DNA of 64,000 nucleotides from Octopus bimaculoides. Its lineage: Eukaryota. Location of the stretch: the NCBI RefSeq assembly GCF_001194135.2, contig NC_068988.1, positions 91,512,342 to 91,576,341 on the forward strand. The letters are read 5' to 3'. The position numbers were made by a program, and so were the translations under genes. Below the pieces are notes generated by a model, which saw only the letters and a list, made by a program, of their open reading frames with translations, ran no database searches and was not told the DNA's origin. This document shows positions 37,301-62,894 of the stretch, piece by piece; the stretch's first letter is position 1; each line of letters starts with the position of its first letter.

Positions 37301-40300
37301 ATATTTTTGCCTCTGTGGGATAAATAAATTGTTGTTGTTATTATTAACAGATCCTAGTGTTTAAAAAAATACCACTCAACTGGCAATTTTTTTATCACCT
37401 CAGGAGGAATTAAGGCAAAATAGAAAATCCCACTAAGGTCAACTTTACCTTTTATCCCTTGTGGGTCAATAAAATAAAGTATTAGTTAAGTAGTGAGGTT
37501 GATTTAATCAACTAACCACTTCCCCTAGAACAGAATATGATGCAAACCCATGTCGTCCCACATTTACCTTCACCACCGCTCTGATCATCCACATCATATA
37601 ATTCAGTCAAATCTGAAATCCTAATTTTTGAGGATAAAACTGATTTGTACTGATATAGAGGATTATATCTGGCAGAATTTTTCCCTTTTAGGGGCGAATT
37701 TTTCATTTCAAATTTTTCAATTTTGATTTTGCACATCAAAATTTTACAAAAATGTCTATGAAGAGGAGTGTAAGCTCTTCTCTTCTTTACACACCACACC
37801 CTCTGTAGTCGAACAACTGCATAAAAGAAATGTCAAACGTTAACTGTCTCCACCCACTCAGTGCCTTAAAGGGCAAAGAAGAGAAGGAGAAGAAGCGTTC
37901 TGGCACATGCAGCACTAAAGAGGAAAACGAAGGCTGTTCATTGGACCGCCTTTCCAATAAACATTTCCTTGCTCTCACCACCACTATTGCTCCTACACTG
38001 GAGAGGGAGGAAGAGAGAAGTGGCAACGTGTGTACCAGTGTGACCACCAGCAACACCACCAAGGCCAACACAAGCAGCTACGACGACAACAACAACAACA
38101 ATAAGGCCAAGTGCAATGGTTTCACATCCACGGCAAAACAAACATCAGAGGAAATCAAGGTAACGATTGAAGATATAAAAAATGCAAAGGAGTTGTTAAG
38201 GAAGGACGGAAACAATGTCTTCTTTAACACTCCACAAGAATTAATACATGTAACTAACAAAAGAACAATCACCTACAAGATATTCAATATAAAACAAAAA
38301 AATAGAATGGACAACTCAACAGCAGTTGGAGATCGCTTTAAAACCAATCATCATCATCATCATCGTTTAACATCCGCTTTCCATGCTAGCATGGGTTGGA
38401 CGATTTGACTGAGGACTGGTGCAACCNNNNNNNNNNTTACCTTCCACAAGTCCTTTAACTTTCAAACTTTGACATACATCTATGAACCTTTAAAGCTTTC
38501 ATATCTGTGAACCTCAAAAATTTTTATTACCCATCAACCTATTACGGAAAATTAAAACTTGTACTCCTACCTTAATCGTATTTTAAATAGTTATTTTATT
38601 TTAATTTCTCTCATCTTCATTCCTATCCTACCATTGGCGTTACCCTGCTGTCTCATTAAAATCCAACCATGTTGCCTGAGATACACTAACACAGGAGGGT
38701 ATCATTTGAAGGAGATTTGGCTGCTATTGGTTGCAAGTCAGGTGACTGCATAAATGTTTTGTTGGAGTATCAATTGCTGAAAGAGCAACAGATGAGAGAA
38801 AAGAGTCCCCAATGTCACCCACAGAATACTGCAATCTGAGTCTATGTATCTATGTACCAACGTTTCTTTTCATCTATGTATCAACTGTCTCTCTCACTTT
38901 CTCTCTTTCTCTCTCTCTTCCTCTGTGTCCCTCCTCTCTCCTGCTTTTAATTTAACACTGTTCTATCTTAATACTGAAGAAAAGTGTGACGGACAGACAG
39001 ATGGATGCAGCTCTTATAGTATAGATTATTATTATTAATAATGAGAATTGACAAGAGCCATCATCAACAACAAGTACTAAATCTCCTTTAAAAGGAAAAT
39101 CAGAGAGGTGTCAGTTAATTTTAGCAGACATTGCTTTAGAAAACAATAAACCAGTTAGTAACTTATAAGAGGCATATCAGAGTGGGACTGCAAATGACAT
39201 GCTAGTAGTGAGAATGGCACTCGACCATTTCTTTGCCATGAAACACAAAGGCTGTAGTATCCAAGCTAGAGTCCATGCTTTGAAACACAAAGGCTCAAAA
39301 GCCATTGGCTGGGCCTGGGTAGCAGAAGCATAGCATGGAAACAAATCTAGAATTCAGTGTGTGACAGACTGCAACAGCCATGTGCTCTCCGATTCCAAAC
39401 AGACGAGCACAGTGTTTCGGCAACACTTTGCTAATCTCCTTTTGAGGAGTGGCATTCTTGAATCAGTAGGCTTTGATGCGTACCTTTATGGTATGCCATG
39501 CCTAACAGACAAGGAGATTGAGTGTTGCAAGAAACTGATTTCAGTGGAAGAAGTGGCAGATGTACTGAGCTGCTGTGTGAGACACAAATCATCAGGATTA
39601 GATGGCCTGCCCTATGAACTATACTTCCACATGTCTGACTTGTTGCTCCAGTTTTGGCAGCAGTCTACGGAAGCATTCCCAGTTGTGTGAGCTGGGGAGT
39701 CGTGACTGCTGAGGAAGGATCCAAACAAGGAGGGTGTGACTGAAAACTTTACTCAACACTGAGTTAAAGATTTTAGCTAAGATGCTCTTTAAGAGTCCGG
39801 CACTTGTTGTTGGTAGTATAGTCAGGGATGCACAAACCTGTGCAATCCCCAGTAGATCTATTCGCAACAACCTCTACCTCATGCAATACATTGTGGAATG
39901 GGTTGGGAATAGATCTGGATTTGGAGGGGCACTGGTCACTTTGGACCAGTCCAAAACTTTTGACAGGGCGGACTATCACTATCTGGTGTCTGTCCTAAAA
40001 GCTGTCAGTTTCGGTCCCGTCTTCAAAGGCTGGATCATCACAGTGTATAGTGGCATCTGCTTGATTGTCAAATTAAATGGCCACCTCTTGAATCCTTTCA
40101 CACAATTAACCAAGGATTCCCTCTCTCCTTGCTTTATATATTTTAGTTTTAGAACCCTTGCTGTGAAGGCTGGAAAATTTGAGGAGTATCCCGCTGGAAC
40201 TAGGCCACAGGACAGCTGTGTCTGCATATGCAGACAACATCACTGTCATGGTATTCAACTCTTTGGATGTAGAAACGATCGATACTATACTGAAAGAATA

Positions 40301-45400: not shown

Positions 45401-47623
45401 CTGATGCAGTGCAAGAGTGGGTAGGAATTAAATGTATCACTTGAAGGCATAGGAAAAAAATGCTGTCAGGATTTAGAATAAACACGAGTGATAAGAGTGG
45501 CAATATTCTATACAGAAGATCCAGCCAACTTGGGAAAACAGACATTGAAGTGATGATAGTGGTGGTGACTGGTTGTACATGAGAAGGAGATTATTTCTTC
45601 CATATAGTATAGAAAAGAATGATTATTTTTCAATTAAGCTTTTATATTATGATTATTATGAAAATATATTCATGACAGTTTGTTAAAAGTTAACATAAAA
45701 ACTCAATGCCTATATACTTTTATTGCTATACTTCATAAACACTTATATTTGCCTATGCATACAGTTTTTGCTAAATAAAAATCTGTAGATATATTCTGAG
45801 GAAAGAATTTTGACCCAGGAAGAACATCACAAATTGAACTTTCAAGAAAATTTCTCCAATTATTAAGAAAACTCTTCTGACAAAATTGAGCTTAATGTTT
45901 CTTTGTCTGATCACTTAGACTGAAGCAAAAACAACAATAACTTATATTCTTTTATCTTAAACAGGAAAAGGAATTGACATTTCATGATACTGAATTCACA
46001 TGTAATGGTTCTCTCAACTGTCTTACTGATGAAGAACATCAAGTGTTGACCAGAACAACTACAGAACTGAGCCACAGTGAGAGCATCAACAAATCTCTAG
46101 TGTCTTTTAATATATCAGAGAAATTGCTTCCAACAAACAGTGTTTTGGGAGTTCACCAATTTCAACCTAGTTGTAGCTCATCATTTACAGCTCCTTCAAA
46201 AGCAACTGACAATCTTCAGGGGACTGTTGATATATATCCACGCAGTGATTCTAGCAAATGTGCATCTCTTGTTTCTTGTGTCTCTCTTGCATCTCATTCA
46301 TCTCTCACATCAATCAACAGTAAGAAAAACCAATTTCTCGACTCCCCACTTGAGGAAAGAATTTTGACCCAAGAAGAACATCACAAACTGAACTTTCAAG
46401 AAAATTTCTCAAATTATCAAGAAAACTCTTCCGACAAAAGTGAGCCTAACGTTTCTTTGTCTGATCACTTAGACAATTTTTCAGGGTCTAATCTCTCTAT
46501 TACCAGTTTCCAAAAGAATTCCATGCACCAGCAAGCCCAGATGTCACCAAAACAGACTTCATTTTGGAAGCCATCTTTATGGGTAAATTTTGAAGTCTTT
46601 TTATGAAACCTCATCTGCATTATTTCTGTGCATTGTTGATATCACCTATGTAGTCTTGTTAGAAACACACATGCAAACATTGGAATTAAAACATTGTGTA
46701 ATCTTTTGGATTATTGGGACACCACCAAAGGGTTCATCTTAAGAGTGTATCACAAACAAGTTGAAATGGAGAATCACATCTCTTTTCTAGTTGTTGCTTT
46801 TATACACACGAAAGTGTTATGATTGTCCTTTTATAGAGATTACAACAGAGTACCTTACCTAACAGCAAGATAGGAATCTCCTCTCTCTCATGGTGCTAAT
46901 ATTTTACTTGCACCACATGTATGAATTAATATATTACATCTGTGTTTATATATTTAGAATTATTCATAAAATAAGTTCATGCATCATAAGGAGAGATGAA
47001 TTGTGATACTTCTGGCAGGACTGATAAAACCACACAGATAGGAGCTGATAATAATTCTAATGAATATTAAAAGCTCTAGTTTCTAATGCTATGCTTTGAC
47101 TTTAAATTTGATTGTTAACAACTGAATTCCTTCAGAATAAAGCTGAATATTATCATGAATGTATTACTGTCTCATTTAGGACAATTTCACTCAAGACAAG
47201 AGTACAAAGATTAACAACTTTCAAGGTAAATTCTTTTAGTCGTTCTTTTAAAATATTCACTGTTGTGTATGTAGCATCATTACTGTAATGTACAGTAAGA
47301 TTCTCTAATAGGAGAGAGCCTTTTTATTTAGGTACTTACTTTTAAAACTATTAAGTGTCCTGTTTTCTATTAAAAACCAGGTGAGTAGAACTAAGTATAC
47401 TGAGACCATTAACGTTACATATCAATCCCAGATATATGACATAATGACTGTTATATAGCCACATGGTTAAGATGATCATATGATTCAGGGTTCAATCCCG
47501 GTGTGCAGACTCTTGAGCGAGTATTTTTTGTCATAGCCTTAAATTTACAAACATTGAGTGAAAGTTGACTGACAGAAATTCTCAGATGTCTCTTTCTCTT
47601 CCTCCCTCCTTCTCCTCTCTGTT

Positions 47624-50417: not shown

Positions 50418-53400
50418 TACACACATGAATACATACTTACATACATATAGTCTTCTTTCATTTTCCATCTACCAAATTTCCTCATAAGGCTTTGGCTGGC
50501 TGAGGGTCATAGCAGAAGACACTTGCCAAAGATGCTGAACCTGAAACCAAGTGGTTGGGAAACATACTGTTTGACTACACAGCCTTGTCTGCACCTATCA
50601 AACACCTACCAAAATTAGTAGTGCTTGTAATATTTTATAGCAGTAGTTGCTCATATTACTACTACAGTTGTTACTACATTAGAGGTGATGATGATATTGG
50701 TGGTAGTTTAATTCCAACTTCTTAGTTATGGTTCCCATTTAACACTGCATAATTAACATCAAATAAGCGTAAACTTTCCATATCCTACAATAAAAATAAT
50801 TTCAAAATTTCTCCCTCTGCAAGAAACCATATACAGGGGTTGGACAAAATAATGGAAACACCTAGCATCTTTGCATTATAATTTTGAAATATCTATAAAA
50901 CCATTGAAAGCTTGTTTATTTTTGTTTTTTGATCTATTGTTAGTGTTGCTTAATATGTTTAGCTAAAATTGCTGTTTCTTTTCAGATATCATCAGAAAAA
51001 GGTAATTAAAATTCATTAAAATGACAGATCTATTGGACTTTCAAAGAGGTCAAATTGTTGGTGCTCGTATGGCAGGTGCTAGCGTAATGCAAACAGCCGA
51101 AATGTTTGATGTATCAAGAAGTGCTGTCTCGAAAGTAACAATAGCCTTTGAGAAAGAGGGAAAAACCTCCTCATTGAAACAAAACTCCAGAAGAAAACCA
51201 AAACTTTCAGATAGGGACCGTCAGACTCTTACACAAATTGTTAGAAAGGATCACAAAAGTACAGCTCCCAAAATTAAAGCAGAGCTTAATGACCACCTCG
51301 AGAACCCAGTTTCTACAAAAACTGTTCACCAGGAGCTGCACAAAGCCGGATTTCACAGGAGGGCTGCAATCAGAAAACTACTACTTTCAAAAGCAAACGT
51401 TGCAAAGCATTTAGAGTGGAGTAAAATCCTACAGAATTAGTCCCTAGAGCAGTGGAAGAATGTTATATCCTCAGATGAGTCATCCTTTACCTTATTTCTG
51501 ACCACCGGCCGAGTATACGAGTAGAGACAGCCAAAAGAAGCATTTGACCCAGATTGCCTTCTTCCAACTGTTAAACATGGAGGAGGATCTGTGATGATTT
51601 GGGGGGGCTATATCTTAGAAATCTGCTGGCCCACTGTTTTGGTTTTCCTTCATGGCAGAATTAATAGTCAAAATTATTTAAGCATTTTTCTGATCAAATT
51701 CATCCAATGGCTGCGGAACTGTTTCTGGAGGGAAGCACAGTCTTTCAGGGTGATAATGCACCAATTCACACAGCTAAAGTTGTTACTGAATGACACAAGG
51801 AGCATTCTAGTGAAGTTGAACATCTTATTATCTGGCCACCACAGTCCCCAGATCTCAATATTATTGAACATTTATGGTGCAATTTAGAAAAACAAGTAAG
51901 GAGTCAATATCCTTTACCATCATCACTACAAGAATTGGAGACTGTTTTAGCTGAAGAATGGACAAAAATTCCTTTGAAAACAATTCAAACTTTGTATGAA
52001 TCCATGCCTTGTAGAATTCAAACTGTAATTACTGCCAAAAGTAGTCCTACCCCATATTAAGATAAATTTGTTTGAAATTTTGAGGTGTTTCCATTATTTT
52101 GTGCAACCCCTGTAATCTTCAAATCCTATTTTATTTTGTTCTTAGCCTTGCCAACAAAGACATATAAGAAATCAGTGACCGTGTCAGTCAGTGATGAATC
52201 TGTAGAAGTTCTTACTGCAAAAGTGTCAGAGAGGAGTAGTCATCAATATTCCTGTACCAGAGAATCAGCCTACTTACCAACTGAGAGTAAAAGTTCCGAC
52301 AATTGTAGCAATTACAAATCTGGTAACATCAAACAACTTGTCCATTCTATTGGAACTGATATGAAAAAATCTATTGCAGTAAGTCACATTCAATGAATTA
52401 AGATGTTGTTCCATAGTTGTATTTAACATTCCAAAATTCTTTTTGCATTTCATTTTCTTTTATATTGACTGATTTGTTGAAGGTGAATGACTACTTTACT
52501 TAATCCACTTTAAATCTACTTTAATAGTTGTTTTTCATGCAACAGGCACTCCTATGTATCTTTCCCATTCACTCTTTTATCACACAACTCAGTGTTCATT
52601 CACAAAGCTCCTACACTTTCTCTTGTCATACTAACATCTTGATTAAACAGTTGTTCTACACTGCCTTGATGATGTATAGAAATGTGTCCCAAAGCTATCA
52701 CCATACTACAAAAGATCAGTTTTACCGGCACTAAATTCTGATATTGTCTCCTCTGCCTTTCTTTACCAGAATTAATCATTATGATAATGGGTTTTTTTCT
52801 CATCAGTTAAGGTGAAATTTAATTAAATAGTATTTTTATTTTTAAATAATACTAAATATGTTTTTAAATTGTATCGAATATTAGCAACCACTTTACTATC
52901 ATTCTCTTAACAGGCATAGTACCCTATCTTCTTCATATATATAAATGAATACACATACATACATACATATACATACATAAGATTTGACATAGGAGCATCT
53001 GGTTGTCCAATCAACTGGACAACTTGCTCATTGAATTAACATGTAACGTTGCTGAGTATTCCACTGACATATATCCTTAATGTAATTCACAAGGAGAACC
53101 AGCATGATGCATTGTGACAAGGCTAGATATTTGAATAACAAGTACAGTCCATCTGATAGGCTTCTATACAGTTTCTTGTAGCAGCTAACTATAATACTAC
53201 TATACCAGTCATTGGGGATGGTGCCTTCCTGAATAACCTGATTAACTATATGGGTGACTAAAACTGTATCTTACACCACCAGAAATTTTAATCATTTTGG
53301 CAGTGATTCCTGATGGCCCAGGGGCTTTCCACGTCTTCATGTCCTTAATTACCTTATCTATTATGCTGCTATCAACTCTGAAGGCTAGACCCTCAATTGG

Positions 53401-56400
53401 TTTGATATTTGGTAGATTCTCCTTCACCCATTCATTTTCCACATTTAGTAACCTTTCATAGTGACACTTCCATGCATCCTTCTTCTCTGAGTCACTAAGT
53501 GCAAGCATACTATTATCCATTCGCACACATTTCTCACCTACCACATCTCTATTCTCTCTGATACACTGCTTTGCAATCCTGAACACCTCATGCCTCTGAT
53601 CCTCATGCTGTAAAACATTTGCAAATCTCTTACCTTCAGCTACTCCTTTTGCTATGTATACCTGATGCCTATCTGCCCTNNNNNNNNNNNNNNNNNNNNN
53701 NNNNNNNNNNNNNNNNNNCTGTCAACCTCCTTGCTCCACCACCATGTCACCCTTGGTCTAGCTGAGACTCTGCACCAACCACAGATTTCGTCCGTAACCC
53801 TCAGTAGATTGTCCCGCAGGAACTTCCAATTGTCCTCTAAGCTATATGTCCCCAACTCTTCCTCTCTTTTGTCAGAAGCTTCCATTAGTAAATCTCTAAA
53901 TTTTTGTCTGTTTGCTGGGTCTTTGAGCTTCCATAGTCTTCTTTTCCAGATTGGTTTATTTCTCTGAGTCTTTCTAGCTCTAATTCTGAAGTCACTGTTG
54001 GGTTGTACAATTTTCACCTGAGAAAGACTTTATATTTTTAAGCATCCATCTATTCGTGACCTGGTGAGGAGGTAGTCACTCTGGCTTATGTGCTCACCAG
54101 ACTGATAAGTGATTAAGTGGTTGGCTGGTTTTTTGAAGTTAGTGTTGCAGATCATGAGATCATTTGCATCACAGAACTCCAGCAGTCTTGTTCCCTCCTC
54201 ATATCTAGGTCCAAAACTATAGTCCCCATGCACTCCCTGGAATCCATTGAAGTCACCAGCCACAAGTCTCTGTCATTTGTCATTGAGATGATCTGCAAAA
54301 GGATCTCATAGAATTGGTCCTTCTGCTCATCAGTCGGCCCAGACTGAGGAGCATAGGCAGAGATAAATGTCACTGTTAATTTACCTAGGATAAGTCTCAT
54401 CTTAATTACCCTATCACATACTCTGGCTACCTCAATTACCTTATCTACCCACTTTTCTGCTAACAGTATGCCTACTCCACCCACTCCATCCTTCCTGCTG
54501 ACCCCAAATAATTCGAATCTCTGTCTCTTACCTGTGAGGAATCTAGCTGAGGTTCCCCTCCATCTTACTTTTTGCACACCACACACATCAACATGGTGTC
54601 ACTTCAGCATTTCAATAATCTCCCCACTCCTTCCTTTCCTTGTGCCAACACTGATGGTAGCAACCCTGAGATTGAGTACTTGGAAGTGGTAGCAGTACGG
54701 TAGTTTTGGAAATTTTGCCATCACCTGAAATGAAGATCTGCAAAAATGCTTGCCAGCTACCATAGAGTTTTGACACAGTTTATTCAGTAAATTACAACGA
54801 ATCACAGTTCCCCCACCTTGCCCAACATCTAGAGCAAGAGCCAACAAGTTGATATGAGAATAGAGTAGTTACATAGGGCAGTTTAACTATTATATGTCTA
54901 AATATTTATATATGAGGTACCTTTATCTGTATACTATATTCACCAGGGTGCTTATATGAGGATATAACGAGGTATAAAGGTATACTCAAAATGTGTATTC
55001 ACATACGCAGGAAGTGTATGAGTCGCCAGGTAAAATTGTTAATGTACGAATTAAGATGGTGGGGGGGAGGATGGGTGGGCATAACAGGTGTGCAAAATGG
55101 ATGTTGAACACAGGCCATGTGCAAACTAAGTTTTACATACGACATAGCGAAACGGGCTCAGAAGAAAAGCCATAGTATTTAATAATTATCATTATTCTTA
55201 TTATCATTAAAATATTAATGCTAAATTAATATTACATGGAAAAATGCGAGCATGAAAAGTAATATTCTTAAGAGTATAAAGCTGGAAAAGTACAGAACAA
55301 GTTATTACACCTGGAAAAGTACAGGACAAGCTATTACTTCTAGTAAAGCAAAGAGTAAGAAACTTTTTACTTAAGATATTGCAGCAAAGAATGCCATTCT
55401 TCTAATTTATCACTCTTTACAGTTCTCATCTTTAAATTTATTATACAAAATTGTTCGGATAATTATTCACTTTTTTCTGTATTTAAGTTATTAAATGAGC
55501 CAAATTCTACATAAATAAGTATAGTGTTATTTGTAAATTATAATAAAATAATTTTTAATATTCAAATTTTAATTTTAGCTGCAATATTTTAAGTAAAAAG
55601 TTTCTTATTCTTTACTAGAAGTAATAGCTTGTCCTATACTTTTACAGGTGCAATAACTTGTCCTGTACTTTTCCAGGTTTATAATCTTAAGAATATTACT
55701 TTTCAAGCTCGCATTTTTCCATGTAATCCATGATTTTTCCAGGCATTGCTGTTATAAGATAATTAATAATGTGTCAATTAATAATTTAAGATTTTAAATT
55801 ATAAAATACTGAAAGATAATATATCAATTTTTCCATGTAAGTGATGATGATGTTTCAATTTTTTTCATGTTTAATTTAAATATATGTTGTGATTGAATTA
55901 TTTGATATTACCCATCCACACCAAATTAATGTTGGTTGCACCATGGCTCACCAAAAGTTACAAACAAGACCCTAAAACCATCAGTTACCAGGCTCACCTT
56001 AAGTAACCTAATTTTGCAATATTAGGTGGTCACAGGAATTCATACAACAACAAAAAAAAAAATTCCAGTTATTCTGGGATTAGTGGGGAAACCCCCACCT
56101 CATTTTTTCCAAACAAAAATAAGGGATTTGCAGCATATTAGGAGGTCAGGGTACTTGATTCCACGCAAAAAATCAAATTTTTTGTGTTTTTTTTTCTAAT
56201 ATAGAAATTGACCATAATGTTGTTGCTATTTAGCCTCAAATCAACCCTGATACTGCAGACCTATCATCAAAGACATTCCAGCCTTCAGCAAACCGTCTTT
56301 TCAGGGATAATGTAGGACATTACATACAATGGTTGTGTGATTTAGGTAGGGGAATACTTTGGCTGCTATTTTTAGCGTATCAAGTGACCAGGTAGAGGCT

Positions 56401-59400
56401 CTTTCATTGGTTTGATTACATGATGAGATCTTTTTACTCATGTATATATATCATCGCAAACACGAATTTGTCCATGGTCACTTTGTAACTTCTGACAAAA
56501 TAACTTCTAAAATACAAAATTTTGTCAAAAACGTTAAGAGTAAACCCTGTTCTATGTAACACATTCTAACAATATCGGAAGTTTGAAAGTGTTTAGTTAA
56601 AAAAAATTAATTAAATAATCTGAACACCAAAGTCGACCTCGGTGAAATTTGAAATCAAAACATAAAGACAGATGAAATACCACTAAGCATTTCACCCAGT
56701 GCGCTAATGTTTCTGCCAACTNNNNNNNNNNCCTTGAGGTTGCAGATATTTTGATGTAACTTTTTTTCTACTGAACCAAATCTTAAACTATTTATGCCAA
56801 AGTGTAGCTGACGGGTTGTCCTCTTTAAAACTATTAACAGTTTGCAATTTAGTTGAGAACTGAATTAGTGGTGAATCTGGGAAGCTGCTGCGATTGATGA
56901 AATGGTGGACTTAAGAATATATTCAACCGTGGTTGAATGATACATCCACATTTTAATCATTAAATTTATCGCATATGCATTTTGCAATGGGATTGGTAAT
57001 CTGGCTGAAATTAAAATGAAATGAAAGTACATATGGCCTTGGCAACTAGATATTAAAAGAAATGGGGGAACCCTAGATTCATTGACTTAGTCACATTTGA
57101 ATAACAACAACAATCACTTAGTTGTTGATTCAAGAAAGAGCAGTAAAGAAATGGAATACTATTTGGGAATGTATTTTAAATAATTGAAAATAAATCCTAC
57201 AAACACTACTGATTATTATGAAATATCTCAGAAGTCTTTACAAAATAAGATGGTTATTGCTATAAATTCTTACACACACACACACTCTCTCTCTCTCTCT
57301 CTCTCTCTAAATGCACCAAATATACATGAAATGATGACTGAAAATAGATTAACTACACATGCATACACATATGTATTTACCTTGGACATGAAACTGTTTT
57401 TAGCAGTGAGTAGCATACTTATGAAGTGAGTAGATTGTTATAATTCTCAAAAAATTTCCTGCTTCAACATTTTCCTTTGCTAAATATCCTTTGTTTTATG
57501 TCTCTTTGTTTTATGTCTCTTTGTTTTCACACCATGATGGCCCCGTTATTTACATTTGCCACTTTTAGATAAAACAGACTAATATATCTGCAATCACTAA
57601 AGAAACTCTAGCTAAAACAGAGAAGGCCCTTTTGAAAGTATGGCAAAAAGATTTTCACAGCCGGTAAACTACATTTTATATTAATTTTTTACTATCTTGT
57701 ACATATTAAGTGCAGTTATTAAATTTAACAAAAACATTCTAAAGCTGGTAAGCTTGGTTTTATTTCCATTTTTCTTTCTTCTGTATAGAAAGTGTGATTA
57801 TTAGATTTGTTTCTATTTTAAAATTTAAATGTAAACACAGTAATTTTAGCAACATTCACCCTGTGACTTGCTATCAAATCTTGGTGCAAGAGTTTGTTCT
57901 TGTATTTCATTAACTTTGAAAGAAGAAATAGAATTTTTTTTCAATTTCTGTTCACGATTTAAACTATTTACACATGCCACACTCTCTCCCTCTCTCTCTC
58001 TCTCTCTCATGATCAACTAATCATGTAATGTGTCAGGACAATCTCCTTTATTTTTCTTTGTATGAGGAGAATTGTTGTTGTTGTTGTTGGCACTCCGTCG
58101 CTTACGATGTCGAGGGTTCCAGTTGATCCGATCAACGGAACAGCCTGCTCGTGAAATTAACGTGCAAGTGGCTGAGCACTCCACAGACACGTGTACCCTT
58201 AACGTAGTTCTCAGGGATATTCAGCGTGACACAGTGTGACAAGGCTGACCCTTTGAATTACAGGCACAACAGAAACAGGAAGTAAGAGTGAGAGAAAGTT
58301 GTGGTGGAAGAGTACAGCAGGGTTCGCCACCATCCCCCTGCCGGAGCCTCGTGGAGCTTTAGGTGTTTTCGCTCAATAAACACTCACAATNNNNNNNNNN
58401 NNNNNNNNNNNNNNNNNNNNNNNNNNNNNNNNNNNNNNNNNNNNNNNNNNNNNNNNNNNNNNNNNNNNNNNNNNNNNNNNNNNNNNNNNNNNNNNNNNNN
58501 NNNNNNNNNNNNNNNNNNNNNNNNNNNNNNNNNNNNNNNNNNNNNNNNNNNNNNNNNNNNNNNNNNNNNNNNNNNNNNNNNNNNNNNNNNNNNNNNNNNN
58601 NNNNNNNNNNNNNNNNNNNNNNNNNNNNNNNNNNNNNNNNNNNNNNNNNNNNNNNNNNNNNNNNNNNNNNNNNNNNNNNNNNNNNNNNNNNNNNNNNNNN
58701 NNNNNNNNNNNNNNNNNNNNNNNNNNNNNNNNNNNNNNNNNNNNNNNNNNNNNNNNNNNNNNNNNNNNNNNNNNNNNNNNNNNNNNNNNNNNNNNNNNNN
58801 NNNTCTCTCTCTCTCTCTCCTCTTCACACTTGCACACACATATTGAGTATAGAGGATGTGTGAAGGTTAGAGAGAAATGAAGCATGCTCTGCTTGAGCTG
58901 TAATGTTAGTATACAAGAGCAACATAGTACATATCAGGTAAGAAAATAACTGTGTGTAAGATGAATCAGATATATTGTGCAAGAGGGATGATTGCATTGG
59001 AATGGACAGATAATGTGTTTGAATGATGACAGAGGAGTAGAAAAGCACCAAGAGATTCAAGTAGAATAAAATTGTGAAAGAGGAAAACCGAGGAAAAAGT
59101 TGTAATATCACATATGGAAATCAAATGTTGTCTTTGCTGTAAACTGTACAACTGTATTAAATGATTTATGTATGTTATAATAATAATAATTTTGTCTTCT
59201 TCATTTAACTTTACATTGTTTCTGAAGATTATTTTACTTTTCCTTCCCTAATTATTTTAGACATGACCTGCACAAAGATTTTGAGAGTAAAGTATTCAGA
59301 GAATTTGAGAGACTTCACAGAGAAATACTCTCTTCTGAAGAATGCAGACAAACACTTATGGTATGTAGCTTTTCATTTCATTTCTTCCATGCTGGCAGAG

Positions 59401-62400
59401 TTTCAGAGAAATGTGTTTGTTTCATTTGAAATGATATAACAGGCATTATATTGTATTTGCTTATGTGTAGTGGCATAGAATTGGTTAAACATGACCATAT
59501 AGTGTGTTTCCCTTATAGTTTTGATTTGTAGTGACTTTGAACACAGCACTGAAGCTAGCAGAACACTTGTTTACCACAGTACTTTTCTTGCATCAATAAA
59601 CTGTATCTATAGAATTTATTTGAGTCTCATATTGATATTTATTTTAATATATTTACATATAGATTATGTGGTTACTGGTATATTTAGATGTTTAACTGTG
59701 CACACATTTTAATTAGCTCTATCTATCCAGCAGGGTTGTGTCTTGGCTCCCACTCTGTTCAGTGGCTGCATGGACTGGATACTCAACCAAATGGTGGCTC
59801 AATCAAGTTGTGGTGCCCTCATTGGTGAAACTAGTGTAATGGACCTAGATTTTTAGCTGATGACACAGTTATTCTTGTTGAGTCTCTGGATGTCTTTAGG
59901 AGTGCACTCCTTTCACGGAGTAAGGAAGCAGAACTATCTAGACTTCGAGTCTCTTGGGTCAAGATAAAAGTCCAGTCTTTCATTGGTTTCTTGGAGGACT
60001 CCACCTCATCTGTCTCTGTGGCAGGTGAGTATGTTGAAGTTGTTGACTGCTTCACTTACCTTAGCATTGGAATTCATAGTGACATTAGCTGCAAGTCTGA
60101 ATTCCTAAAAAAGACCTGGACGAGCTGGTGTGGTTGTCGATTCATTGAACAAGGCTCCTAAACCGCTAAGGTGTGGCACTTTTTCCCACAGCTATCCTCA
60201 TCCATTTTCGCCACATGACCATACCAGCGCAATCGTCTCTCTTGCACACCACATCTGATGCTTCTTTGGTCCAACTTTTCTGTTAATAATAAATCATTGT
60301 CTTTCTATTTTCAGAAAACTGTTGATGAACAAATAGAAAACTCAGAAAATTGTCGATTCTCACAAATGAAATGGTAAGAAAAATTGAAAGTAACAAAATT
60401 GAATGTTATGTCCATTAATATAACTTCATATCATCATCATTAGTTATCTTTAAGAAAATTTAAGCCCTTATCCCTACTCAATAAAGACATAATGTCTTAT
60501 GAGTTTCATCATCATCATCATCATTTAACATCTGCTTTCCATACTGGTGAGTTAATTGCTATTTTTTATTATTTAATTAATTTACCCAGAAAAAGGTAAC
60601 TTCACTAAAATAGTGAGTGGTCTGGGCAGGATTTGAACTTAAAATGCACAGAGCCAGAACATACTGTAGATGGCTATTTCACTATTACACAGCTCTTGAC
60701 TGGTACTTCATTTTATTAACCCACAAGGCATTTAATTTAATGATCTAGCAATTCTACTAATCAGCCATCCTAACAAATCTTCTTTTAAAAATTCACATTG
60801 AAGGAATGTAAATGTAAAACATTACACTGGTAGGATATATACACTGCCCTTGAAGGGTTTTAGTCTGGAAATTATAGTTGTGATCCCCGTGCTGGTGGCA
60901 TGTAGAAAGCACCATTCAAATGTGGCCGATGCCAGCGCCGGCCTGATTGGCTTCCGCTGTACTAGTGGCACGTAAAAGGCACCAACCGATTGTGGTCGTT
61001 GCCAGCCTCCTTTGGCCCCTGTGCCAGTGGCACGTAAAAAGCACCCACTACACTCTCAGAGTGGTTGGCGTTAAGAAGGACATTCAGTTGTAAATACACT
61101 GCCAGATCCGACTAGAGCGTGGAGCAGCCTCATGGCATCCCAGACCTCAGTCAAACCGTCAAACCCATGTCAGCATGGAAAATGGACATTAAACGATGAT
61201 GATGATGATGATGAAATCAACCCCAGGACTTTTTTTTTTTAAGCCTAGTACTTATTCTATTGTTGTGTTTACAGTGTTGTCACTGGTTGTCAAGTGGTGA
61301 TGGGAGGCAAACCACACACACACACACATATATATATGTATGTTTATACGATGAGATTCTTTCAGTTTCTGTCTACCAGATCCACTCACAAGGCTTTGGT
61401 CAGCCTGAGGCTATAGTAACAGACACTCGCCCAAGCTGCCACACAGTAGGACTATACCTAGAACCATGTGGTAGAGAAGCAAGCTTCTTACCATACAGCT
61501 ACACATGACTCAGTGGTTAGAATGTCAGGCTTACAATCGTGAGGTCGTGAGTCTGGTTCCTGGACCAGGCTGTGTATTGTGTTCTTGAGCAAGACACTTT
61601 ATTTCACATAGCTCCAATTCACTCATCACTGGTGTATCAGCCTTTGCCTTTTCTTTGGACAACATCGATGGCATGGAGAGGGAAGACTGGTATGTACGGG
61701 CAACTGCTGTCCTTTCTCAAACAACCTGCACCTCGGAAGGGAACTTTCTAGATGTAATCCCATCATCATACATGACCAAAAGGGATTTGATATATATATA
61801 CACATGTAACCCAGTGCAACCTGTTGTAAACTGGCAACTCTAGCAAGCTTACTTGGTGCGGAGGGTGATTTTGGACACTGCAGGATGATAAACAAGACCT
61901 GTCAAAGGAGAACTCAGGAGAGATAACGGCCATCCAATTTAGTCAAGTGCAGATAGTGCTCACCAGCCATAGGGAAGACAATCCATCTAAGAGAAGGAAA
62001 TCTCTGATATAAAACTATTCAGTGAGGTCTTAAAACCAGCTAATGTCATGAAGTTGTTATACTTTCATCTATGGATGGCTGATAATAATAATAGAATATA
62101 TATGTATATATATCACTAAAGAATTATGTAAACAAGAAAGAAAAAAAGAGTGCTCAATACATACTGTAGAGCTATGGCTTATTTAATGCAAGCTGAAAAG
62201 GAGCCACACACCTCTACTACAACAAACCTATTCCTATTTCTTCCATCATACTTTAGCCTATCGACACCACGCAGAGCAACCATCCTATTTCCTATTCTCC
62301 TTCTCAGGTAAGAGAGTTCTTTAGTCTTGGAATTACAAAGCAACTACATTTGTGCAGATACCACATATAAAGCACCCAGTACACCCTGCAAAGCAGCTGG

Positions 62401-62748
62401 CATTAATCCACTTTACAGAGTGTACTTGTGCCTCAGGGCTGGATGCCCTTCCTAACCAGAAGGGCATCCAGCTGTAAAATCCGTGTCAAAAGTGACATAG
62501 AAACAAGATGCTGTCCTCAAACTAACTGTCCAACTCATACCAGCATGGAAAGTGGATGTAACACTGATGATGATGATTTATATGAATGAGAGATAGTTGT
62601 TTATATGTTAATCTGTTATTAAACTGTAAATGAATATGGTAATTAATCTAGTATTGTCATTTGTTGCAGCCTAAAACGACTACAGATGCTGTATTCACAG
62701 TATTACACAACCGTGTGCACTGACAATGAAATCAAGAAAGATAAACAG
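1808..62748 (+). CDS. SYCP2: Multi-exon gene, partial at both ends: SYCP2-like meiotic axis / synaptonemal complex protein (long disordered linker plus C-terminal SYCP3/Cor1-like coiled coil). 20 exons, about 1394 codons in window
   Basis: 20 AG...GT exons join with matching phases (1-1-1-2-0-1-0-2-0-0-2-0-2-0-0-1-0-2-0-2-0) and no stop. The C-terminal peptide IKQLVHSIGTDMKKSIA-IKQTNISAITKETLAKTEKALLKVWQKDFHSR-HDLHKDFESKVFREFERLHREILSSEECRQTLM-KTVDEQIENSENCRFSQMKCLKRLQMLYSQYY aligns gaplessly to the recalled SYCP3 core. Linker motifs RLTRKRKPVNYKE and SEISWI resemble recalled vertebrate SYCP2 motifs. Confidence 0.72.
2479..2621. repeat. Near-perfect inverted repeat (63-bp arms, 17-nt spacer); hairpin or MITE remnant
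   Basis: Arm 2479-2541 is the reverse complement of 2559-2621 with a single mismatch. Confidence 0.9.
3833..3949 (+). CDS. SYCP2: SYCP2-like exon (117 nt, phase 1-1): YKKRPENKTTSNSTATELKESNRSILNNPSICTIQETQE
   Basis: Poly-T acceptor ttttttttag at 3832, donor gaaa|gtgtgt; open in the required phase; composition matches the other exons. Confidence 0.7.
7537..7633 (+). CDS. SYCP2: SYCP2-like exon (97 nt, phase 1-2): CAYEENSIVIPESVPLKQQPLVSRKLANSNT
   Basis: Acceptor ttcattttccag at 7536 (an in-frame alternative acceptor at 7503 adds 11 codons), donor taa|gtaagt; the only open frame is the required one. Confidence 0.75.
9250..9848 (+). mobile_element. mariner-family transposon 3' remnant (decayed transposase C-terminus plus right TIR)
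   Basis: HPSYLPDIAPSDYHLFCSLQNHL matches the mariner YSPDLAPSDYHLF motif; upstream VWWDMK; ends ...ttatgggatgacccaa followed by TA. Confidence 0.85.
9890..10330 (+). mobile_element. Two tandem copies of a tRNA-derived SINE (ctggcagaa...gagttcaaat...ataagtaccag...ctggggtcgatgtaatc family)
   Basis: B-box-like GAGTTCAAAT, shared body and (ATT)n tails; approximate bounds. Confidence 0.75.
10357..10432 (+). CDS. SYCP2: SYCP2-like exon (76 nt, phase 2-0): QTPAFDSGIASSVDIQKQRKKTVLE
   Basis: Acceptor ttacctccag at 10356, donor gag|gtaggt; supplies exactly the phase 2 to 0 bridge needed. Confidence 0.8.
12174..12243 (+). CDS. SYCP2: SYCP2-like exon (70 nt, phase 0-1): KTVIKIAPSSTKDVSIREDPSFI
   Basis: Acceptor tattttctttcag at 12173, donor tat|gtaagc. 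Confidence 0.8.
12634..14069 (+). CDS. SYCP2: SYCP2-like giant exon (1436 nt, phase 1-0): HSLIQKNSELK...LYDPYDFDN...SSISVNSK
   Basis: Acceptor ttttgttctctag at 12633, donor aag|gtaagg at 14070; covers most of the 497-aa ORF 12642-14135. Confidence 0.85.
15296..15677 (-). mobile_element. Full-length tRNA-headed SINE with (AAC)n-type tail (family B)
   Basis: Reverse complement begins ggaggcgcaatggcccagtggttagggc...gtttcgattcc (Pol III A and B boxes); near-identical to 35096-35409 and 58072-58390. Confidence 0.9.
16233..16300 (+). CDS. SYCP2: SYCP2-like exon (68 nt, phase 0-2): TAANNARLTRKRKPVNYKEADT
   Basis: Phase-0 continuity requires the AAG acceptor (taaag at 16232); donor tag|gtaagt; basic RKRK-x-x-NYKE motif. 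The 5' boundary is less certain. Confidence 0.75.
18347..18374 (+). CDS. SYCP2: SYCP2-like microexon (28 nt, phase 2-0): S-SEDQINDDE
   Basis: Acceptor ttttatattcataaag at 18346, donor gag|gtaagt; phase fits. Confidence 0.7.
19040..19760 (-). mobile_element. Decayed Tc1/mariner-superfamily transposase fragments (maT/rosa-like)
   Basis: Minus-strand YREVLDKVVKPWVERVCNGRLYVFQQ, plus HTH-like IRTIAKDLKVSESTIRKAV near 19500-19600; approximate bounds. Confidence 0.65.
20377..20419. repeat. Perfect 43-bp palindrome (21-bp arms, 1-nt centre)
   Basis: aaggttgactccattaagacc-t-ggtcttaatggagtcaacctt. Confidence 0.95.
21017..21545. repeat. About 530-bp almost pure A/T low-complexity tract (TA / TATTA units)
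   Basis: Directly visible; only about 3 G and no C. Confidence 0.95.
21682..21864 (+). CDS. SYCP2: SYCP2-like exon (183 nt, phase 0-0): SVVSSRSEASMPQKILK...KQLNQ
   Basis: Acceptor atatgttctag at 21681, donor caa|gtaagt; overlaps ORF 21712-21921. Confidence 0.75.
21895..22380 (+). mobile_element. Two tandem tRNA-derived SINE copies separated by an (ATT)n(AGT)n microsatellite
   Basis: aaggcagcgagctggcagaa...gagttcaaat...ataagtacc pattern twice; (AGT)n at about 22124-22175. Confidence 0.8.
22395..24270 (-). mobile_element. 5'-truncated decayed non-LTR retrotransposon with RT and restriction-like endonuclease (R4/Dong-like RLE clade)
   Basis: Minus strand: GIFQGD, LNHLLFMDDLKLF, YKYLGILE, WLKKGILKKET...AAQDQAL, D-V-A-C...EKIDKY...VPIIVGSLG; A-rich tail at about 22385-22400. 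Confidence 0.9.
24271..24705 (-). mobile_element. Second, divergent RLE-LINE 3' fragment (endonuclease domain plus tail)
   Basis: Minus strand CDHEIKNRKPDIVLVEKENKLCWIIDIACPAD...KVERY (PD-(D/E)xK-type motif); (AAT)/(GAT) tail. Confidence 0.85.
25170..25390 (+). mobile_element. tRNA-derived SINE copy flanked by microsatellites
   Basis: ggcaagctggcagaa...gagttcaaattccgccaaggttgactttg. Confidence 0.75.
26060..26280 (+). mobile_element. tRNA-derived SINE copy
   Basis: gagctagcagaa...gttcaaattccaccaagg...ataagtacag...ctggggtc. Confidence 0.7.
26770..27265 (+). mobile_element. Gypsy-type LTR retrotransposon integrase remnant
   Basis: FHTGHPGISKIK (zinc-binding region), DFAGP, YLIVVDSFTKWPE, LFARYGV...VFDNGTQF...EFKNFC; contains stops and a 35-bp triplication. 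Confidence 0.85.
26997..27101. repeat. 35-bp unit x3 tandem repeat inside the integrase remnant
   Basis: tggccagaaatgtgtaaatgtagaaaacagaaatg repeated three times. Confidence 0.95.
28896..29157. repeat. Long imperfect inverted repeat (92-bp core arms plus polyT/polyA extension, 23-nt loop); foldback/MITE-like
   Basis: 28926-29017 is the reverse complement of 29041-29132 with 8 transition mismatches. Confidence 0.9.
29998..30032 (+). CDS. SYCP2: SYCP2-like small exon (35 nt, phase 0-2): TNKRDNQEQKK
   Basis: Acceptor tctttctgtatttgcag at 29997, donor gag|gtagag. Confidence 0.7.
31569..32117. mobile_element. Non-autonomous DNA transposon (MITE), Kolobok-like, with an inverted telomeric-repeat core
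   Basis: Perfect 24-bp TIR AACGGGGGCCACATTTTTCATTAA; flanking TTAA on both sides (31565-68, 32118-21); purine-purine start as in Kolobok; (TAACCC)/(GGGTTA) head-to-head at 31795-31840. Confidence 0.75.
32258..32285 (+). CDS. SYCP2: SYCP2-like microexon (28 nt, phase 2-0): S-NTNTNKIQK
   Basis: Acceptor ttcttaatttcag at 32257, donor aag|gtaatt; phase fits. Confidence 0.7.
34870..34919 (+). CDS. SYCP2: SYCP2-like exon (50 nt, phase 0-2): ISVPSLSGSHFGSSIT
   Basis: Acceptor ttttcttccatttcag at 34869, donor tca|gtaagt. Confidence 0.75.
35096..35409 (+). mobile_element. tRNA-headed SINE (family B), cut by an assembly gap
   Basis: ggaggcgcaatggcccagtggttagggcagc...gtttcgattcccagacc. Confidence 0.9.
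35775..35879 (+). mobile_element. RTE-tailed SINE 3' fragment
   Basis: cagtcctcagtcaaatcgtccaacccatgctagcatggaaagtggatgttaaacgatgatga. Confidence 0.8.
37809..38345 (+). mobile_element. Probable ORF1 5' remnant of an L1/Tx1-like LINE (ATG at 37830), interrupted by a SINE at 38348-38426
   Basis: About 170 open codons, A/C-rich and unlike the host exons; out of phase with the host gene; upstream of and on the same strand as a Tx1-like ORF2 remnant. The ORF1 identity is inferred. Confidence 0.45.
39190..41700 (+). mobile_element. Decayed L1/Tx1-clade LINE ORF2 (RT plus C-terminal Cys/His region)
   Basis: KSSGLDGLPYELY, RSIRNNL, LDQSKTFDRADY, FGPVFKGWI, SAYADNITV, and a C-terminal C-x2-C...H...C-like segment near 41170-41270; many stops and frameshifts. 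Confidence 0.85.
42640..42850 (+). mobile_element. SINE 3' region (gtttacgtccccgtaacttagcggttcggcaaaagagaccgatagaataagtac family)
   Basis: Recognised abundant repeat; degenerate partial copies at about 11650, 14900-15080 and 61230-61330. Confidence 0.7.
42927..43107 (+). CDS. SYCP2: SYCP2-like exon (181 nt, phase 2-0): NSEISWIAAKKNNHQENQIQKTYSTKKDK...KKLKNYK
   Basis: Acceptor ttaattttcag at 42926, weaker donor aag|gtttta; open in phase 2, matching the previous exon. Confidence 0.75.
44926..45165 (+). mobile_element. Well-preserved tRNA-derived SINE
   Basis: gaggcggcgaactggcagaaacgtt (A-box-like) and ctgagttcaaattccgcc (B-box-like); CpGs retained, suggesting a young copy. Confidence 0.85.
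45797..45920 (+). pseudogene. Intronic 124-bp decayed duplicate of coding sequence 46351-46474
   Basis: Colinear, about 90% identical by eye; a CAA to TAA stop in the copy. Confidence 0.9.
45965..46582 (+). CDS. SYCP2: SYCP2-like exon (618 nt, phase 0-0): EKELTFHDTEF...QTSFWKPSLW
   Basis: Acceptor tttatcttaaacag at 45964, donor tgg|gtaaat; coincides with the 210-aa ORF 45974-46606. Confidence 0.8.
47180..47225 (+). CDS. SYCP2: SYCP2-like exon (46 nt, phase 0-1): DNFTQDKSTKINNFQ
   Basis: Acceptor ctcatttag at 47179, donor aag|gtaaat. Confidence 0.75.
48760..48990 (+). mobile_element. RTE-tailed SINE copy
   Basis: aagtggttggtattaggaagg...catccagc...ccaacccatgccagcatggaaa and a (GAT)n tail. 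Confidence 0.7.
49415..49784. mobile_element. Two RTE-tailed SINE copies in tail-to-tail inverted orientation
   Basis: 49427-49580 (+) is the reverse complement of 49606-49784 (-), joined by a short TATG/TA spacer. Confidence 0.9.
50834..52112 (+). mobile_element. Near-full-length Tc1-like DD34E transposon, transposase pseudogenised
   Basis: 30-bp TIRs caggggttg(g/c)acaaaataatggaaacacct with TA on both sides; ATG 51021 paired-like HTH; SDES, FQGDNAP and SPDLNIIEHLW catalytic motifs; in-frame stops (e.g. 51438) and a frameshift. Confidence 0.95.
52146..52378 (+). CDS. SYCP2: SYCP2-like exon (233 nt, phase 1-0), ending in the start of the coiled coil (SGNIKQLVHSIGTDMKKSIA)
   Basis: Acceptor ttattttgttcttag at 52145, donor gca|gtaagt; lies within ORF 52085-52396. 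Confidence 0.85.
53195..54850 (-). mobile_element. RTE-clade LINE, 5' part (APE endonuclease to the start of RT), decayed and 3'-truncated
   Basis: Minus strand VRWRG, GVGILL, ISAYAPQSG, GDFNG, NTNFKK, TYQSG...DYLL, WWWSKEV, KAPGPSGITA. Confidence 0.9.
55231..55727. mobile_element. Foldback/MITE-like element: about 150-bp imperfect TIRs carrying subterminal tandem repeats
   Basis: 55231-55385 is the reverse complement of 55578-55727 (about 90% by eye); ctggaaaagtacag(a/g)acaag(t/c)tatta occurs twice in each arm; no clear TSD. Confidence 0.8.
57569..57663 (+). CDS. SYCP2: Coiled-coil exon (95 nt, phase 0-2): IKQTNISAITKETLAKTEKALLKVWQKDFHS(R)
   Basis: Acceptor ccacttttag at 57568, donor ccg|gtaaac; the TK..L and VW......R pattern matches recalled SYCP3 TKASL...HVWKTQQDQR. 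Confidence 0.85.
58072..58390 (-). mobile_element. tRNA-headed SINE (family B) with (TTG)n tail, head lost in a gap
   Basis: Near-identical to 15296-15600. Confidence 0.9.
58391..58803. other. Assembly gap (largest); others at 11904-13, 29177-86, 35410-35681, 38427-36, 47912-48091, 53680-718 and 56722-31
   Basis: N runs. Exon phases match across each gap, so only frame-neutral exon content could be hidden in them. Confidence 0.99.
59261..59360 (+). CDS. SYCP2: Coiled-coil exon (100 nt, phase 2-0): HDLHKDFESKVFREFERLHREILSSEECRQTLM
   Basis: Acceptor attattttag at 59260, donor atg|gtatgt; heptad-like helix. Confidence 0.85.
59728..60150 (+). mobile_element. RTE-type reverse transcriptase fragment
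   Basis: QQGCVLAPTLF...DLDF-ADD, FTYLSI; frameshifted. Confidence 0.8.
60315..60373 (+). CDS. SYCP2: Coiled-coil exon (59 nt, phase 0-2): KTVDEQIENSENCRFSQMK
   Basis: Acceptor ttctattttcag at 60314, donor atg|gtaaga. Confidence 0.85.
60885..61215 (+). mobile_element. RTE-tailed SINE / LINE 3' UTR with repeated ggcacgtaaaa(a)gcacc motifs and a (GAT)n tail
   Basis: Same tail family as 433-600 and 49415-49784. Confidence 0.75.
61355..61505 (-). mobile_element. SINE head fragment (tttcagtttctgtctaccaaatccactcacaaggctttggt family)
   Basis: Similar copies at about 9075-9210, 15120-15270 and 50455-50590, and in the opposite orientation at about 33825-33960. Confidence 0.65.
62670..62748 (+). CDS. 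SYCP2: Coiled-coil exon (79 nt, phase 2-0): C-LKRLQMLYSQYYTTVCTDNEIKKDKQ; gene continues beyond the window
   Basis: Acceptor tttgttgcag at 62669, donor cag|gtaaag; matches recalled SYCP3 RLKTIKQLYEQF. Confidence 0.85.
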
Positions 62749-62894
62749 GTAAAGAATGTCCTAAATTTGATATTACAAGTATTCCAAAATGTAGGATACT
62801 TTCCTTATACAAGACATATGCATAAAAAATTACACTTCATATTTATATATATCTTTTTTCTTCTTGTTTCTCTCCTTATTTCTTTCTGTGTTCC

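Follow-up and report, generated by a model that had tools for sequence, protein, structure and literature searches.

A probable SYCP2 gene of Octopus bimaculoides, apparently unannotated, carries the SYCP3-like tail found in related invertebrates

Introduction

When the C-terminal end of a gene resembles SYCP3, does it belong to an ordinary SYCP3 gene, to the longer relative SYCP2, or to something between the two? The question is raised by a stretch of 64,000 nucleotides (nt) from Octopus bimaculoides (assembly GCF_001194135.2, contig NC_068988.1, positions 91,512,342 to 91,576,341 of the forward strand), referred to here as the window. An earlier reading of its letters (the sequence-only reading) had described a SYCP2-sized protein ending in an SYCP3-like helical core. 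The analysis reported here indicates that the window very probably contains the 3' part (two-thirds) of a cephalopod-like SYCP2 orthologue, of which at least about 1200 codons are visible. The gene is apparently an unannotated new member of the family, and its tail, diverged as it is, appears normal for SYCP2 in related invertebrates.

That SYCP2 and SYCP3 have related coiled coils, which the sequence-only reading took as established, is indeed already published (PMC8131943; PMC6349405). Among the homologues of the SYCP2 coiled coil SYCP3 is the closest, and the duplication that gave rise to it has been placed at the root of Metazoa (Tromer et al. 2021, PMC8131943); limited homology between the two coiled coils has also been noted (West et al. 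2019, PMC6349405). SYCP2-type members of the SYCP2-3 family are defined by the order ARM, PH, coiled coil (Tromer et al. 2021, PMC8131943), and the coiled coil of mammalian SYCP2 forms 2:2 heterotetramers and filaments with SYCP3 (PMC6349405; PMC8131943). Analogous axis cores, in which a long protein tetramerises through a coiled coil at its C-terminus, are provided by Red1 in yeast and ASY3/ASY4 in plants, and plants also have a short, coiled-coil-only copy (West et al. 2019, PMC6349405; Tromer et al. 2021, PMC8131943). Red1 forms homotetramers, and no similarity in sequence between these proteins and the octopus gene would be expected. Among molluscs, the oyster has SYCP2 and SYCP3 annotated separately, according to an earlier survey (PMC4132317), and a literature search for cephalopod SYCP2 or SYCP3 found nothing.

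Five exons encode a helical tail

The window is AT-rich eukaryotic DNA (35% GC) interrupted by eight runs of N. On its plus strand, from 52146 to 62748, five exons (E1 to E5; Table 1) can be defined by splice sites and reading phase alone, all with AG/GT boundaries and compatible phases. They were located by a search for motifs, phase and splice sites before the gene structure of any relative was compared. E1 opens in mid-codon with two bases, has no in-frame ATG to serve as a start codon, and encodes 57 non-conserved residues followed by the onset of the SYCP3-like core, SGNIKQLVHSIGTDMKKSIA. Two codons are split further on, an Arg codon made up of CG at the 3' end of E2 and the first base, A, of E3, and a Cys codon made up of TG at the 3' end of E4 and the first base, C, of E5. 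E4 is the best-supported 59-nt AG..GT candidate in the phase needed, with pyrimidines at 16 of the 20 positions upstream and the donor GTAAGA. Once joined, the tail starts SGNIKQLVHSIGTDMKKSIA/IKQTNISAITKETLAKTEKALLKVWQKDFHSR/HDLHKDF... and finishes .../LKRLQMLYSQYYTT....

Because E5 is followed directly by the donor GTAAAG, the gene extends past this exon, and by analogy with the relatives described below two further exons, of 66 and 54 nt, are probably to be expected beyond the window. No acceptable candidate for the 66-nt sixth exon was found in 62749-64000. One candidate, at 63426-63533 (EITDLQQKHLF, compare DIAELQKKLLF), was rejected, since it cannot be read in frame from E5, which ends in phase 0, and it scores no better than chance. 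Within the tail, three runs of N lie in the introns between E1 and E3 (Table 1); they conceal no coding exon, because the flanking exons join in frame and have the same lengths, 95 and 100 nt, as their counterparts in the gastropod and the annelid.

The tail is related to SYCP3

Comparisons were made with a segment of 131 residues, comprising the last 20 residues of E1 together with E2 to E5. Human SYCP3 (PDB 4CPC) is its sole clear match in the PDB (HMMER E 4.7e-6, against E 0.28 for the runner-up). The two align without a gap over 119 of the 131 residues, with 23 identities and 59 positives; the human sequence used was checked against 4CPC and is exact for residues 65-230. A Smith-Waterman alignment of the tail with human SYCP3 scores 123, whereas 5000 plain and 5000 heptad-preserving shuffles score 36±6.4 with maxima of 72-75 (z about 13). 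Exon by exon, the ungapped scores are 36 for E1, 31 for E2, 24 for E3, 2 for E4 and 29 for E5, and E1, E2 and E5, which were placed by motifs and splice sites without scoring against human SYCP3, give 96 of the total of 122. A tblastn search of the window with human SYCP3 returned nothing significant because the exons are short. The Pfam profile Cor1 (PF04803) matches the tail with 25-26.3 bits (E about 1e-5 to 2.4e-5) over profile positions 1-102 of 132. A gap of 12 residues that MAFFT opened at the end of the tail was discarded as a truncation artefact; the relatives align gap-free across E5. Judged by these comparisons of sequence, the tail is homologous to the SYCP3/Cor1 helical core.

Much of the sequence-only reading of the tail is borne out. 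Its five exons encoding about 130 helical residues stand, with canonical splice sites, compatible phases and a core of 131 residues, and so do its gap-free alignment to SYCP3, with about 22 identities, and its hallmark sites, all of which are present (G.D..K, TK..L, VW......R, L...........F, EE and R..Q...LK....LY.Q). Of the limits it gave, 62748 is the end of E5, whereas 52325 falls inside E1.

Intron positions place the tail with SYCP2-type genes

The relatives that permit a comparison of gene structure came from a profile built from tetrapod SYCP3 sequences and E1 and E5 of the window (E2 to E4, which MAFFT misplaced, were left out). Searched against 1.84 billion representatives, it gave 515 matches; the 150 listed are, with few exceptions, short proteins of the SYCP3 type, and a single long protein stands among the matches listed, XP_041358620.1 from the gastropod Gigantopelta aegis (1443 residues, matched at residues 1274-1441). 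This 'uncharacterized protein' (LOC121375304) consists of a Ser/Lys-rich arm and a C-terminal Cor1 match that, at 51.6 bits, is above threshold. The start of its gene model is overlapped, on the same strand, by a model of 698 amino acids with PF18584 (SYCP2_SLD), which reads the first ~110 nt of its 2.4-kilobase (kb) exon in another frame and then meets a stop. As the shared exon is read in two frames, the two models are therefore taken to be one SYCP2 gene split by a frameshift. The split in the NCBI annotation of CM027795.1 (locus 1-25664) suggests that the frameshift lies in an A-rich stretch near 11460-11570 (locus coordinates).

A second relative is provided by the annelid Lamellibrachia satsuma, in which KAI0216857.1, a protein of 192 amino acids annotated as 'Synaptonemal complex protein 3', lies 3.8 kb downstream of a 1745-residue SYCP2_SLD model on the same strand. 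Its frame remains open upstream of the annotated ATG, and in all likelihood it represents not SYCP3 but the C-terminal end of SYCP2, split off from the rest. A further model of 109 amino acids, also on the same strand, is found just upstream of it (JAHXPS010004774.1, 1-14444).

The proteins of these relatives were mapped exactly onto their own loci. The tail exons of Gigantopelta are 233, 95, 100, 59, 79, 66 and 54 nt long and those of Lamellibrachia 95, 100, 59, 79, 66 and 54 nt, compared with 233, 95, 100, 59 and 79 nt in the window. Exon phases are the same in all three, those of the 95-, 100-, 59- and 79-nt exons being 0-2, 1-0, 0-2 and 1-0. E1 matches the Gigantopelta exon at 20033-20265 in both length and phase, and that exon is internal in the snail gene. 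Canonical SYCP3 is built differently: the core exons of the sea-urchin gene (XP_041472448.1) measure 35, 118, 100, 99, 105 and 54 nt, and the same boundaries recur across the mappable core exons of Mytilus SYCP3. The introns after KSIA and after SQMK-C, the second of them at the 3' end of E4, are present in the window and in the SYCP2-type genes but not in canonical SYCP3 of sea urchin and mussel. Conversely, the canonical SYCP3 introns at FG/AD and after EQYxK are both missing in the window tail. Of the whole pattern, the window tail has only two elements in common with canonical SYCP3, the Arg-codon intron and an exon of 100 nt with matching phase (Table 1). The tail is called SYCP2-type because its exon lengths and phases are identical to those at two SYCP2 loci, in both of which these exons lie downstream of SYCP2_SLD exons. 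On this point too the sequence-only reading, which had assigned the tail to a long SYCP2-type gene and not to a short SYCP3, has held.

The phase-2 Arg-codon intron after VW......R and the 100-nt exon are shared by SYCP2-type tails and canonical SYCP3. The relatives' SYCP2-type genes also have the final 54-nt exon in common with SYCP3, and the length after the 100-nt exon is equal in the two (258 nt). The shared intron and exons fit an origin of SYCP3 by genomic duplication, as opposed to retroduplication, of the 3' exons of SYCP2.

One more model met in the comparison, CAG2191479.1 of Mytilus edulis (CAJPWZ010000363.1, 1001-43363), is named 'SYCP3' and has 533 amino acids; it matches FNIP_N/M/C as well as a partial Cor1 core and looks chimeric.

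Among the SYCP2-type tails compared, that of the window has diverged furthest

Scored over the same 131-residue segment in every sequence, Cor1 gives 26.3 bits for the window tail, 50.1 for Gigantopelta, 51.0 for a third SYCP2-type tail (P0269), 56.8 for Lamellibrachia and 119.5 for sea-urchin SYCP3. Identities tell the same story: the window tail has 23/131 in common with human SYCP3, 27/131 with sea-urchin SYCP3 and 25/131 with Gigantopelta, the Gigantopelta tail has 31/131 in common with human SYCP3, and human and sea-urchin SYCP3 agree at 62/131 (47%). In the window, L replaces the conserved W of QQW (canonical motif QQW[DE]xD), and the FKQQQK motif is not present. Thus canonical SYCP3 is highly conserved and SYCP2-type tails are diverged, that of the window most of all among those compared.

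These figures do not support two other claims of the sequence-only reading, that the tail is unusually SYCP3-like and that it is a possible intermediate in the SYCP2/SYCP3 duplication. The window tail has the lowest Cor1 score of the SYCP2-type tails and is no closer to SYCP3 than are other mollusc SYCP2 tails, the very outcome that the sequence-only reading had said would take away the novelty. As far as these sequences go, an SYCP3-like tail is the normal condition for SYCP2 in related invertebrates and not an unusual intermediate.

A long low-complexity arm probably precedes the tail

Upstream of E1, the plus strand holds five open frames of 306, 514, 79, 199 and 221 codons, far beyond the length expected at 35% GC, in which the arm exons A, B, C, D and F (Table 1) were placed. 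A Pfam scan of the upstream open frames in the window found no domain. The exons were chained by taking the top-scoring donor of each frame with the top or the frame-initial acceptor of the next. The best donor of exon A, at 2392 (GTAAGC), leaves one base, which fits the acceptor of exon B; exon B uses its best acceptor and its best donor (AAG/GTAAGG); exon D has an alternative donor at 38249 in the same phase; and exon F, with its best acceptor (ttaaacag/G) and best donor (AAA/GTGAGC), leaves a base that fits the two leading bases of E1. An open reading frame at 42910-43206 was left out of the gene model, as no acceptor fits the phase of exon D. The resulting chain, A-B-C-D-F-E1, is phase-compatible at all five junctions, for which a rough estimate puts the chance probability at about 2%, and carried through to E5 it is an uninterrupted open frame of 1198 codons, of which 1067 residues precede the helical part. 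A long low-complexity arm, as in the sequence-only reading, is thus plausible; the figure of 'about 1265' residues given there is approximate, the chain giving the lower number just stated with some boundaries uncertain.

In composition the arm (Ser 16, Lys 12, Asn 10 and Thr 9%) is close to that of Gigantopelta (Ser 15, Lys 12.5, Thr 8 and Glu 8%). The tail is probably joined to these upstream low-complexity exons, to judge from the genomic reading frame, and the internal status of the 233-nt exon in Gigantopelta supports the joining of arm and tail in the window.

The arms of the window and Gigantopelta cannot be aligned and match exactly in a single place, the hexapeptide DPYDFD (window 13596-13613, in exon B; residues 712-717 of XP_041358620.1). 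SYCP3 N-termini bear a similar [YM]DF[EDQ] (AYDFE, SYDFQ, KMDFE). The chance expectation of any shared 6-mer is estimated at about 0.2-0.5, so that DPYDFD can do no more than hint at a short linear motif. Another motif, STLKRK[YF]PD, which is found upstream of the tail in two relatives, does not occur in the window.

Searches for closer relatives returned little. Against 5.8 billion public proteins the tail recovered solely the read-through open frame of E1 in a closely related species (Logan assembly of SRR11869385), in which E1 is conserved with a single indel, of 6 nt and in frame. The 514-codon frame of exon B found no homologue in the same 5.8 billion proteins. An alignment search with the octopus tail and human and mouse SYCP3 gave only tetrapod SYCP3 among the matches listed.

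Table 1. Exons of the proposed gene, assembly gaps in the tail introns, and corresponding exons of relatives. Positions are those of the window unless another genome is named; a slash in a splice site marks the exon boundary.
Feature	Position	Strand	Length or content	Boundaries and remarks
Tail exon E1	52146-52378	+	233 nt	first 2 bases finish a split codon; ends in phase 0; acceptor ttgttcttag/CC; donor GCA/GTAAGT
Tail exon E2	57569-57663	+	95 nt; IKQTNISAITKETLAKTEKALLKVWQKDFHS(R)	carries TK..L and VW......R sites
Tail exon E3	59261-59360	+	100 nt; HDLHKDFESKVFREFERLHREILSSEECRQTLM	splice sites read; the shared 100-nt exon
Tail exon E4	60315-60373	+	59 nt; KTVDEQIENSENCRFSQMK(C)	
Tail exon E5	62670-62748	+	79 nt; LKRLQMLYSQYYTTVCTDNEIKKDKQ	
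Arm exon A	1808..2392	+	Ser/Lys-rich	5' boundary uncertain, alternative acceptor 1611
Arm exon B	12634..14069	+	about 479 codons; Ser/Asn/Lys-rich	
Arm exon C	21682..21864	+	61 codons, predicted	best donor AA/GTAAGT; phase 0 at both ends, fits B and D
Arm exon D	37809..38159	+	117 codons, predicted	donor AAG/GTAACG, phase 0
Arm exon F	45965..46439	+	158 codons and 1 base, predicted	no in-frame ATG
N gaps	53680-53718; 56722-56731			E1-E2 intron
N gap	58391-58803			E2-E3 intron
Shared 100-nt exon, Gigantopelta	21420-21519		100 nt	
Shared 100-nt exon, sea urchin	4229-4328		100 nt	
Final exon, Gigantopelta	25611-25664		54 nt	
Final exon, sea urchin	17349-17402		54 nt	

Weighing the SYCP2 reading against its alternatives

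Several observations weigh against the view that the window holds an SYCP2 orthologue. The N-terminal ARM-like (ARLD) and PH/Spt16M-like (SLD) domains would lie outside the window, upstream of base 1, and the topology that defines SYCP2 is therefore not seen. In sequence, the tail is no nearer to Gigantopelta than to SYCP3; because it is equally far from both, the SYCP2-type assignment is founded on intron positions and architecture and not on a tree. The Cor1 check on the joined exons that the sequence-only reading had proposed does give a match, with E about 1e-5, but its 26.3 bits stay below the gathering score of 32.1; the final Cor1 profile positions are encoded beyond the window, yet other tails trimmed alike still reach 50-120 bits. 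A Pfam match to Mer2 rivalled Cor1 in one scan (E 2.6e-5 against 2.4e-5) and was weaker in another; it was set aside as coiled-coil noise. Since coiled-coil composition alone can yield E near 1e-5, the shuffle test and the gene structure are relied on over Pfam. As for the arm, its junctions, like those of the tail, are read from genomic DNA alone, and codon usage, profiled on exons A and B, gave too noisy a signal to set the 3' ends of D and F. The junction of F with E1 hinges on the donor at 46439; the frame runs on for 55 codons beyond it, and another donor, at 46582, has phase 0 and does not fit E1. Their intron moreover holds a Tc1/mariner insertion and a gap of 180 N (47912-48091).

A lineage-specific SYCP2-type paralogue, or a copy in decay, would account for a tail that is the most diverged of those compared. 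The Tc1/mariner element 31 nt upstream of the E1 acceptor would suit such a copy, as would the about equal conservation of E1 and its flanking intron in comparison with the related species, the lowest Cor1 score among SYCP2-type tails, and the lack of any arm homologue among 5.8 billion proteins. Against it stand five open tail exons of ancestral length with intact AG and GT, a chain of 1198 codons free of stops, and an E1 whose sole indel relative to the related species, of 6 nt, is in frame; SYCP2 arms, besides, typically diverge fast. A functional orthologue is the preferred reading, and a paralogue or relic is considered unlikely.

About as unlikely is a reading in which the tail exons make up a short SYCP3 gene of the ordinary sort (about 230 amino acids), with a small unseen first exon, and the Ser/Lys-rich exons belong to an unrelated neighbour. 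In database searches the tail matches SYCP3 proteins best, the splice from F to E1 is unproven, and the 57 residues that E1 supplies before the core come close to the roughly 65 of SYCP3. But the introns after KSIA and SQMK-C are of the SYCP2 type and foreign to sea-urchin and mussel SYCP3, the 233-nt E1 equals an internal exon of Gigantopelta in length and phase, and E1 is without a start codon. A canonical SYCP3 would also be expected to be much better conserved (47% identity of the human and sea-urchin proteins, with 120 Cor1 bits) than a tail with 26 bits and L for the W of QQW. That the SYCP3 likeness is mere noise of coiled-coil composition over chance open frames is exceedingly improbable: although in one scan the Mer2 match is as strong as that of Cor1, both under their cut-offs, and E4 adds almost nothing to the score, heptad-preserving shuffles peak at 75 against the observed 123, the alignment runs gap-free through five exons, and two genes annotated independently show the same exon lengths and phases.

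Transposons and repeats at the locus

The Tc1/mariner element occupies 50832-52114, in the intron that precedes E1. Its terminal inverted repeats of 32 nt are 97% complementary, a TA duplication is present, and the transposase frames, though broken, still match HTH_Tnp_Tc3_2 and DDE_3. Only 31 nt separate its end from the E1 acceptor, so that it may sit near the branch point. The insertion is recent, as the related species lacks the element at the same site. Open frames at 53242-54598 on the minus strand, in intron 1 beside the N gap at 53680, and at 63778-63999 on the plus strand, at the end of the window, look like fragments of non-long-terminal-repeat retrotransposon endonuclease and reverse transcriptase; Pfam gives no match for them at E 0.001. 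Two interspersed repeat families occur in introns and at exon edges (15287-15571 and 58066-58376; also 38340-38405 and 60504-60550). Their translated signatures are ALRRLRCRGFQLIRSTEQPAREINVQVAEHSTDTCTLN and HHHHH(R/H)LTSAFH, and the latter makes up much of the long open frame past the proposed donor of exon D.

Proposed organisation and comparison with known systems

The product of the gene would consist of a long, Ser/Lys/Asn/Thr-rich and probably disordered arm, encoded by few large exons, followed by a C-terminal coiled coil encoded by the five small exons in the window and probably two beyond it. If it behaves as mammalian SYCP2 does, the C-terminal helix would pack with SYCP3 into an antiparallel 2:2 four-helix bundle (West et al. 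2019, PMC6349405), and such bundles would join at their ends to give filaments, around which the meiotic chromosome axis is built as its core. By the same analogy with mammals, the arm and the N-terminal domains would tether HORMA-domain proteins and chromatin. On this reading SYCP3 is an ancient copy of the SYCP2 coiled coil, the likeness in lophotrochozoan SYCP2 being still strong enough for the Pfam profile Cor1 to detect.

The closest counterpart is SYCP2 of Gigantopelta aegis, which has a Ser/Lys-rich arm of about 1100-1200 residues and a Cor1-like tail, the same run of five tail exons in the same phases, and DPYDFD. The two differ in the low identity of their tails (25/131), in arms that cannot be aligned except at DPYDFD, in the Cor1 score (50 bits for the snail tail against 26 for that of the window) and in the arm exons, of which Gigantopelta has one of 2.4 kb and many small ones, whereas the window has several large ones. 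Lamellibrachia KAI0216857.1 agrees in the 95/100/59/79(/66/54) exons and in its place downstream of SYCP2 N-terminal exons; unlike the octopus tail, it is annotated as a separate short protein, has a first exon of different length and is more SYCP3-like, with 56.8 bits. Mammalian SYCP2, compared by its published description, is alike in plan, with a long, poorly conserved middle and an SYCP3-related C-terminal coiled coil (PMC6349405; PMC8131943), although its N-terminal ARM-like and PH-like domains and its closure motif for HORMAD have no visible counterpart in the window; the motif, which follows directly on the N-terminal domain, would be expected outside the window or right at its beginning. 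Canonical SYCP3 (human 4CPC, sea urchin, Mytilus, Batillaria and Pinctada) has a helical core of equal length that aligns gap-free, but is a short protein of about 190-250 amino acids with its own start codon near the core, which is ~45-50% identical across phyla.

A more radical arrangement can be imagined, in which the lineage lacks canonical SYCP3 and the diverged SYCP2 tail alone builds the axis filament as a homotetramer, in the manner of Red1. The tail is indeed the most diverged of the SYCP2-type tails compared. Source names were looked up for 30 of 150 SYCP3-family representatives, and these include bivalves, gastropods, a brachiopod, a priapulid, sponges and a coral but no cephalopod, which, this not being a systematic search, is weak evidence. 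Such an arrangement is regarded as scarcely likely.

Implications

The understanding of the meiotic axis is unchanged by this finding, whose value lies in the gene and in its family. It supplies a usable model for the 3' part of SYCP2 where the gene seems to be unannotated, and it draws attention to an annotation trap, namely that lophotrochozoan SYCP2 tails pass or approach the Cor1 threshold and are split off as 'SYCP3' or 'uncharacterized' proteins. Comparison of intron positions offers a simple means of telling the tail of SYCP2 from true SYCP3. The same gene structure adds support to the published view of the family, in which SYCP3 is a genomic copy of the 3' exons of SYCP2.

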